Positions 54,601 through 57,600 of a stretch of 64,000 nucleotides of DNA are shown here, piece by piece (positions within the stretch are counted from its first letter, which is position 1; every line of letters starts with the position of its first letter). The notes beneath the pieces were generated by a model. The model searched no databases. It saw only the letters and a list, made by a program, of their open reading frames with translations, and was not told the origin of the DNA. The DNA comes from Bugula neritina (Eukaryota > Animalia > Bryozoa): NCBI GenBank assembly GCA_964035545.1, contig OZ037767.1, positions 2,739,680-2,803,679 of the forward strand, in the 5' to 3' direction. A program made the translations under genes and the position numbers.

Positions 54601-57600
54601 GTAACTCACTTCTTCCAGGGTAACACACAGAGACCACAGCATTTCTCCAGACCTTCTAGACTCTTCTCGGCATCCTTCATGTCTGTATTAATCTTATCCA
54701 TCCCTTCCTCTATTCGGTCCAGCTGCTCTGCACATTGGAATATAAACTTCAGCACAATGTACCAGCATTGTATGAAATATATCAATTAAATGCATCAAGC
54801 TTCAAACATAGTGCAGCCTTCTGACAGAATTTAAAAAGTGAATTGCATCAGCATAGCAATTATTGGTGATCACATGATCAGCTTATGCTATTTTAGAATT
54901 ATTATATCAGGTATGAATCGGGTACCATCATTTACAGGAGCCAGTTTAACAAAAGCAATGTCAATACTTCAACATTAGTTAACTAAAAATACGAATGAAG
55001 ATCTAACAGTTCCCCAATACCATACCAATTTTGAAGGAAATTCAAATTATCATTGTGTATAATGAGATAGTTGCAAGAAAGAGTAAAACTGAAAAATGTA
55101 ACAAATGGATACATAGATAGGGCCTTACCGCCTTGCTCATTCAGAGCTACGATAGTTTTGACACCACTATCTTGGGCCTAAAACACATATTGGGTAGACA
55201 ACACCTGAAAAGCTGGAAATTATAAAGTGACACGCACACAACATTTATTAAGTAAAAGTATGATGGAAACGTATACAAAATGAAAGGGTTAGTGGACTAG
55301 CGACTGAATACAATTAATTATATTGTATTGCTATAATAACATATAAACCAAGCATCTGCTAACTAATAAAATCTACAGCAAATTAAAATTGTAAAGCACG
55401 GGAATTTGTATAAAATGTGTGAGACAACACACATCTACAACAAACCAGTATCAACAGCGTTTAATCTATGATGTCACCAGTTTAGTTAGAAATGACTAAA
55501 TTGGAATAATTGTGATGGTGTATCATGGACTAGTGATGTTGATACAGCAGGTAAACTGAAAACAGACTATCATTACCTCCTTGCTCATCCAGAAATACTA
55601 GCGTTTTTATACCGGCTTCCTTACTCTGGGGATACAAATATATTCACTTAACTCATGGAGAGGCAACGACCAGTAATATTTTATGAGGCCGAAAATACAT
55701 TCTTTAACTTATAAGGAGATAAATCCCACTAACATCTGTCTAATATATTGGATAACTTATGAGTTTATTAGAATACCACCAATATCTGATCACTACACCT
55801 GATTGGCTGAGAGCAACTCACCTCTGCTGCCATCTCCATCATCCGCCTCGTACTCTCCAGTGACTAAAAACACAAAATAATGAAATAGCAATGTAGACAG
55901 CCAACACTAACACCAGATAGTTCGAAAGGTGCTTTGTATGAATATGAAAAGTTTCAGCGTTGAAAGTTTGGAGGAGGATTTAGTTAAACAGTAGATGGTA
56001 AGAAACAAACTAAACACTAGGAAATACTGTGAAAACGTGCATGATAAATAGAGAGGATAACCCTGTTAACTTGAGTTTGATATACAGTGTAAAAGTAGAC
56101 TTCCACCTGTGTATAGGATTGCAGTGACACAGTGCACACTTCATACTCTACATCATTCTGGTAGTCCAATTGTACATGTAAATGTACATGTATGTGTAAG
56201 TGTAGTACAGTGTGCGGTTGCACGTAACACACAGTACATGTATATGTTGCATGTAGCACACACAGTACATGTATGTGTTGCATGTAGCACACACAGTACA
56301 TACATGTGTTGCATGTAGCACACACAGTATGTGCACACAATACATGTATATGTAACACACACAGTACATGTATGTGTTGTGTAAGGGCTAAACAAGTCCA
56401 GAGTATTGATTATTGTGCACACTTTAAAAGCATATCCTGTATTGAATAGCCCTGTGCTTTCACTGTCTTTCATCAATACAAACAATCAACTGATAATTCC
56501 TATTCCCACAAGACACACCAGAGTCAAGAAGGCTAGAGTAAACATCACCTAATTACTCTACACTCACAAAGCATGCATCAAAGCAAAAAATTTCAAGTGC
56601 TCCATTTTACTATCTTAAAAAGTTTAGCTACAGGTTCTATTGATGATTTAGTATGTGAGTTATTTCCACTTTGCAATATGGCATCACTATTGAGTTTAGA
56701 AAGTAGTTCCTATTGATTGAATACTCAATTATCAGACATGTATTCTACAATCTGCAAGATAAATTTCAGAGCTTAATTGTCAGACAAAAAACAGTGAAAA
56801 TTTTTAAAATTTTGCCACAATGTTAGTATACTTTTGGAGTAATCCAAGACTTTGTAACTAGATGAGCACAGAAGCAGTAGAAACAGCGGTGACATAACAA
56901 TCTCAGTTTATTACTTCGGGCAGACAGACATGTTGGTGGCTATTCAGCCCAACGTGGAAGAAGCTGCATTTAACTCAGTGATGAGGAGGTGTACGTTAGT
57001 TTGATAGTATACTTCTAAAAACCTGAAAAATGCATTTTCTAAAGAGACTCAACTCATAAATAATGCTTTTGCACAGCTTAGGATAAAGAGTGTGGCATAT
57101 CCAATTATTTCAGTACTGCTAGCCATGAAGGTGAAGGTTGAAAATTGCTACACAAACTAAACCTTATGCCCATTCAGGTGACTATTGCCTATTGGTTTAG
57201 TGGTGTAAGAGAGAGGAGCTATTGGAGAGATGGACAGTTTTTCATAAAACTTTTTGCATTATTTTTTAGCTTTAAAATGATTTCCCTATAAAAATATACT
57301 TTTAAAAGTATTCTAAAGATATATTTTGCAGAAGAAAGAAGACAATTGCATGAATAACCTTAACAAGCAAGTTAAAGCTTGATGTTTCTGAAATATTAAA
57401 GTAACATAATAGTATTTCAATTTCATTCAAATGATAAATGATTTTTGCAGTTGACTGTGTGAACCAACAACCTGTTTATTAGAGTTTAAATTGAATAAAT
57501 TAACAAACAGCAAACAGCTGCCAAGCATGGTTAAGGCAGCAGAGACTTTGTGCCAGTATCAAATGTAACTGCTTCAAGAGATTTATAACAGTGAATCTGG

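Follow-up and report, generated by a model that had tools for sequence, protein, structure and literature searches.

In vertebrates, the SNAP-25a and SNAP-25b isoforms arise from mutually exclusive use of a tandemly duplicated exon within the first SNARE helix, the 118-nt exon 5 that encodes the cysteine cluster, and this duplication has been dated to bony fish (PMC2581893). A duplicated-exon event has also been catalogued for Drosophila Snap25, the exon concerned being unstated (PMC9741552 supplement), and the alternative SNAP-25 first exons of C. elegans, ric-4a and ric-4b, differ in usage among neuron types (PMC12084653). SNAP-25 sequence variability was described in a 1999 cockroach paper, as cited in PMC12857021. 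It is an open question which residues enable SNAP-25, and not SNAP-23, to sustain fast synchronous release (PMC4244210).

The SNAP-25 gene of the bryozoan Bugula neritina likewise carries a tandem pair of alternative exons, 3a and 3b, in the first SNARE helix. It was found in a window of 64,000 nt, the whole stretch of DNA analysed here (assembly GCA_964035545.1, contig OZ037767.1, positions 2,739,680 to 2,803,679), to which coordinates below refer unless prefixed. Unlike in vertebrates, the duplicated exon is the one before the exon-5 equivalent and encodes residues 39-54. The possibility that 3a/3b are homologues of vertebrate exons 5a/5b was rejected, as that equivalent is exon 4, present in a single copy. 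We favor, with a probability of roughly 0.55, the interpretation that 3a and 3b are functional tandem-duplicated alternative exons stemming from an old duplication, with a Lys40 copy tightly coupled to synaptotagmin-1 (Syt1) and a Gln40 copy resembling SNAP-23. The RefSeq isoform annotation and the duplicated exon of Drosophila Snap25 were already known; papers on a conserved Lys40/Gln40 choice, or on its likeness to SNAP-25/SNAP-23, were not found in a search of the openly accessible literature, to which the main papers on SNARE evolution, published in subscription journals, do not belong.

The SNAP-25 locus and its paired exon 3

On the minus strand, the exons follow each other in the order 1a or 1b, 2, 3a or 3b, 4, 5, 6, and 7a or 7b. 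The alternative first coding exons are 1a (61481..61576), which has an ATG and an in-frame GT donor, and the predicted 1b (57943..58056), with an ATG and a GT donor in phase 0. Exon 2 (55822..55863; 42 nt), whose splicing was read from RNA contigs, encodes residues 25-38 and has A37 where E37 is expected. Downstream of the 3a/3b pair, exon 4 (54610..54727; 118 nt) encodes the cysteine cluster and is the homologue of vertebrate exon 5a/5b. It is followed by the linker exon 5 (54120..54248) and by exon 6 (53711..53855), which encodes the second SNARE helix with N159 and D166 kept; both show RNA joints. Exon 6 joins either 7a (53276..53341; joint in X1 and X3) or 7b (51570..51638; joint in X1, X2 and X3), and the alternative ends would allow up to eight isoforms.

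Database searches were run one exon at a time, and exons were joined solely for locating the first in-frame stop codon. PDB SNAP-25 chains are matched by exon 4 (E 8e-12) and exon 6 (E 1e-15), and Pfam PF00835 (SNAP-25) by exon 5 (E 0.0017), a hit that falls short of the cut-off for whole proteins since the query is a single exon. The features of a SNAP-25 family (Qbc) SNARE are all found: two SNARE helices with a Gln in the zero layer of each (Q53 in both 3a and 3b), a cysteine cluster in exon 4 and a linker, no transmembrane anchor, and charged C-termini. Two interleaved genes were considered and rejected, given that exons 2, 4, 5 and 6 are single and that both last exons join exon 6.

When the B. 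neritina genome (216,009,554 bases in 321 contigs) was searched with exons 4 and 6, the matches were confined to this gene and to a tandem paralog (46463..49860, minus strand), whose intron positions, as established by genome search and sequence reading, are those of the main gene. The paralog has one exon 3 (48384-48336), of the Lys40 type. It has a 1b-like first exon and a 69-nt last exon resembling 7b, with Ile at layer residue T46 and Asn at E37. Elsewhere in the window are Rab40-like GTPase exons (19368-23075, minus strand), a leucine-rich-repeat exon (28341-28817, plus strand) and an ionotropic glutamate receptor exon (40700-41047, plus strand) beside a long CT microsatellite. Tandem repeat arrays at 20122-20564, 58750-59040 and 60660-60970 give rise to spurious repetitive open reading frames.

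The initial annotation had described two 49-nt alternative exons, and both are present on the minus strand, 3a at 55577..55625 and 3b at 55129..55177, each preceded by AG and followed by GT and encoding the peptide announced. They are identical at 31 of 49 nucleotides and 8 of 16 residues. When the window's 43,650 stop-free frames of 16 codons were scored by BLOSUM against 3a, the values were 78 for 3a itself, 54 for the paralog exon, 49 for 3b and at most 25 for the rest; as no frame beyond the paralog exon scores near 3b, the likeness of the pair is not due to chance. With 3a or 3b alone the frame is complete, at 216-221 codons, whereas inclusion of both leads to a stop at codon 72 and of neither to a stop at codon 58, in keeping with the frame shift that had been foreseen. 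The residue numbering (S39-G54, with K40, D51, E52 and Q53) is consistent with rat peptide 37-53 as given in PMC8967716. The segment covers layers -4 to 0, and 3b does retain the zero-layer Gln and the hydrophobic layers attributed to it (A39, G43, T46, L50, Q53). Exon 3a has K40, D51, E52 and Q53, from which 3b, with Q40, N51, E52 and Q53, departs at 39, 40, 41, 42, 44, 47, 49 and 51; among these differences, V44 and I47 were absent from the initial annotation, and S42 is added. In structure, the two exons resemble mutually exclusive duplicated exons, being adjacent, homologous, equal in length and phase, and bounded by canonical splice sites.

Splicing was examined in contigs of X1, X2 and X3, runs thought to be RNA, from two studies. 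These contigs are approximately 5% divergent from the window, and hence come from another strain or a sibling species. Each copy is spliced into mRNA: GT-AG joints link 3b to exon 4 in X1, X2 and X3, and 3a to exon 4 in X3 only. On the other side, exon 2 is joined to 3b in X2, with loose ends in X1 and X3, while a 2-3a joint is not among the joints listed. Loose ends also lead from exon 2 into 1a in all three runs. No 3a-3b or 2-4 joints are listed in the RNA contigs, which drop rare variants and cannot show absence, and the DNA run X4 has none of the splice joints. The pieces in X2 are compatible with the path 1a-2-3b-4-5, although contigs cannot phase exons. Contig depth at the X3 joints is 255 for 3b and 108 for 3a, but depth is a poor measure, and therefore only the statement that 3b is not rare is taken from it. 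Far from never being spliced in, 3b is spliced in all three RNA runs; it is not a minor form, being the sole copy seen spliced in two of them. Contigs of X1 and X2 run unspliced into the introns near 3a/3b at 54998-55158, 55286-55606 and 55451-55738, as retained introns or pre-mRNA, and short non-canonical skips in X2 and X3 at 51695-51832, upstream of 7b, are probably strain indels.

How one copy excludes the other can be considered from the intervening sequence. The spacer between 3a and 3b is 399 nt long, and the nearest upstream AG lies 29 nt from the 3b acceptor, with no long AG-free zone, which argues against steric exclusion. Docking-site/selector pairing was sought by comparing the window with the contig of a related bryozoan, L035; the introns are not conserved and no shared inverted repeat was found. 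The simplest account would be a regulated choice between 3a and 3b, with the frame-shifted products of double inclusion or double skipping being removed by nonsense-mediated decay.

The metagenome contigs L033 and L035-L037, whose exons are close to those of the window, were taken to be from another bryozoan. Exon order is the same, and the introns are unalignable. Between the window and L035, exon 3a differs by seven synonymous codons and 3b by eight, with no non-synonymous codon in either, so that both peptides are identical; by this comparison of coding sequences, 3a and 3b are both under purifying selection. An extra 7a-like last exon is present between 7a and 7b in the related contig (L035:5739).

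Distribution among animals and the probable ancestral state

The Lys40/Gln40 pair is not peculiar to B. neritina but bilaterian-wide, and the duplication behind it is at least protostome-wide in extent and probably bilaterian. Isoforms of one gene switch over these 16 residues from Lys40 to a non-Lys, mostly Gln40, form in 19 genera, among bivalves, gastropods, Lingula, Limulus, a copepod, insects, three starfish genera and a sea cucumber. Tandem 49-nt cassettes are found at genomic loci, namely three in the annelid Owenia (L040), three at L038 and two in the starfish Acanthaster (L043), and three non-Lys tandem cassettes lie in the stretch examined of the lobster locus (L039). Alternative first and last exons accompany the cassettes in most of these genes; as molluscs, Owenia, lobster and echinoderms all have this layout, it is old as well.

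Nematostella has one Gln40 copy (L047) with no intron after it, and other sampled cnidarians, Trichoplax and a sponge are also devoid of Lys40. Gln40 therefore looks ancestral and Lys40 derived, and it follows that, of the two copies, the derived one is probably 3a. The initial annotation had given K40->Q and D51->N as changes in 3b; Q40 and N51 are indeed present, but the polarity at position 40 is probably the reverse. The Nematostella intron is missing between the equivalents of exons 3 and 4 (L047:8389-8440), and the 49-nt cassette may thus depend on an intron gained in bilaterians. Lys40 is found alone in the sampled nematode and flatworm proteins, from single-copy genes, and Gln40 alone in the sampled tunicates. 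Amphioxus has a gene A with a single Gln cassette and a second gene B with Lys40, placed as sisters with weak support (86/58); the vertebrate proteins, SNAP-25 and SNAP-23, group together in a separate clade (100/98).

A profile of the cassettes was built from the 19 within-gene pairs, with position 40 excluded and with leave-one-out evaluation. It assigned 37 of 38 held-out cassettes correctly, a figure that pertains to 16 residues, to related genera that are not independent samples, and to one chosen partner copy where three exist. It groups vertebrate SNAP-25, amphioxus B and the window paralog with the Lys cassettes, as it does the tunicate cassettes despite their Gln40, and it groups amphioxus A and each of the nine SNAP-23 (one weakly) with the Gln cassettes. 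Position 40 is the only one that separates all 19 pairs, and the most constant differences across phyla include 40, 41 and 42.

A tentative history may be proposed on this basis. The protostome-deuterostome ancestor would have had one SNAP-25 gene, with a splice choice between the old Gln40 cassette and a new Lys40 one providing tight Syt1 coupling; in vertebrates (SNAP-25/SNAP-23), in amphioxus and, probably, in tardigrades, each of two paralogs would later have come to carry a single fixed cassette, such that the divide between neuronal and general Qbc-SNAREs began as an exon choice. The Lys/Gln pairs of different phyla might instead result from independent, convergent duplications with no shared ancestral cassette, the likeness to SNAP-23 being the retained ancestral Gln40. 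This alternative, which concerns history and is compatible with either function, is a serious contender short of even odds. The order of the copies differs, the Lys copy being first in Bugula, L035 and Owenia and the Gln copy in Acanthaster (L043:78121, 78881), a reversal that leaves room for independent duplications; moreover, arrays of at least three copies show turnover, CAA and AAA differ by one base, and amphioxus gene A has one copy. Sixteen codons hold little signal, and a nucleotide phylogeny of the cassettes was rejected, third positions being saturated. On the other hand, the Lys copies of protostomes and echinoderms share the multi-site signature K40, E41, A42 and are classed correctly without position 40 (37/38), the Gln copies of starfish, brachiopod and amphioxus are identical peptides, and the alternative first and last exons are shared too.

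The synaptotagmin interface

Residues K40, D51, E52, E55, Q56 and D166 belong to the primary interface (PMC8967716; PMC9811660), and the face at 40, 44, 47 and 51 binds the synaptotagmin C2B domain in the rat complex. Both copies are spliced to exon 4 and retain the core layers of the SNARE helix, and their sequences diverge on this outward face. The 3a isoforms have K40, D51, E52, E55 and D166, and 3b is without K40 and D51; E55, N159 and D166 are encoded by exons common to both isoforms, and E37 is lost in both. The Syt1 of B. neritina (L027; C6:1373660-1379115) can be aligned with rat C2B without a gap and retains R281, E295, K297, N336, Y338, R398 and R399, residue numbers being from PMC8967716 and bioRxiv 10.1101/2025.09.30.679486 and placed by reading alignments. 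A second Syt1-like gene (L005/L031; C3:24007830-24013250) has a C2B without the R398/R399 pair.

Both acids at 51/52 are kept in all 19 Lys40 cassettes, whereas 8 of the 19 partner cassettes lose at least one of them, mostly that at 52 and, in Bugula, that at 51; the remaining 11 keep both. This pattern is in line with C2B contact being relaxed or altered in the non-Lys copy. At the interface, SNAP-23 departs from SNAP-25 by K40Q, L47I and V48T, and with Syt2 it still drives Ca2+-triggered fusion (PMC8967716). In neurons, release with SNAP-23 is asynchronous and depends on Syt7, and spontaneous release is increased; the three central acids are retained in SNAP-23, and in chromaffin cells a linker stretch decides the speed difference between SNAP-25 and SNAP-23 (PMC4244210). 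K40E perturbs evoked release (PMC10102358). Judging from SNAP-23, which works with Syt2 and Syt7, K40Q alone does not appear to uncouple Ca2+ triggering. SNAP-23/Syt2 fusion and the mapping of speed to the linker speak against an overly simple view; 3b may reasonably be regarded as less tightly coupled, as first proposed, and is unlikely to be uncoupled; a splice switch in synaptotagmin coupling is plausible.

In the favored interpretation, the Lys40 copy would offer the full Syt1 interface for fast synchronous release. The Gln40 copy, like SNAP-23, would still fuse and still be triggerable by Ca2+, would be less tightly clamped or synchronised, and might serve general, endocrine or slower secretion, with one gene covering roles divided in vertebrates between SNAP-25 and SNAP-23. 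Against this, sampled tunicate and cnidarian SNAP-25 proteins, from a non-exhaustive search of paralogs, are Gln40 and yet these animals have fast synapses; SNAP-23/Syt2 fusion, linker-set speed, the 11 of 19 partners with both acids, and the absence of E37 from both isoforms also weigh against it.

It is less likely, though quite possible, that the exons are real and selected while the switch tunes another trait, such as the rate or stability of N-terminal zippering, the choice of syntaxin, Munc18 or Munc13, contact with alpha-SNAP or complexin, or kinase sites. The extent of the exon over layers -4 to 0, the further changes of 3b at 39, 41, 42 and 49, with the added S42, and the constancy of 41 and 42 besides 40 would suit such a role, as would the mapping of SNAP-25/23 speed to the linker. 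However, 3a and 3b alike retain the residues of the core layers, the sole position separating all 19 pairs is an interface residue, and acid loss at 51/52 is limited to non-Lys copies (8/19 versus 0/19). That 3b is a decayed or non-functional duplicate is extremely improbable: few Gln-type copies are as divergent (23/32 at codon positions 1-2 when set against that of the starfish), but its RNA joints in three runs and its unchanged peptide in the second bryozoan also led to its rejection as a pseudo-exon.

Comparison with known SNAP-25 and SNAP-23 systems

The interest of the pair rests on its distribution and on the parallel with SNAP-23 more than on the B. neritina genome alone. The two isoforms are identical outside a 16-residue segment on the face that contacts synaptotagmin, and K40, D51 and E52 are lost by degrees across numerous species, which form a natural series for rescue experiments. 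If the proposed history is true, it puts a date on one step in the emergence of fast synapses in bilaterians, and SNAP-25 and SNAP-23 represent a splice choice fixed in duplicated genes.

The duplication of exon 5 belongs to bony fish and that of residues 39-54 to protostomes and echinoderms. Alongside the Drosophila Snap25 event, RefSeq isoforms of insects, molluscs and echinoderms differ at the same 16 residues as in Bugula, and these isoform sets are annotated without interpretation. C. elegans ric-4 has alternative first exons as in Bugula, but the sampled nematodes have only the Lys40 form at 39-54. With SNAP-23, 3b has K40Q and L47I in common, while 3a equals SNAP-25 at 40, 44, 47, 48, 51 and 52. 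The full SNAP-23 signature is nevertheless not found in 3b, as SNAP-23 keeps D51/E52 and has V48T, whereas 3b has D51N and keeps V48. Furthermore, vertebrate SNAP-23 and SNAP-25 are separate genes that differ along their whole length, whereas the Bugula isoforms share one linker. Exon 3b would thus resemble SNAP-23 in its manner of working only, rather than being a member of the SNAP-23 family.
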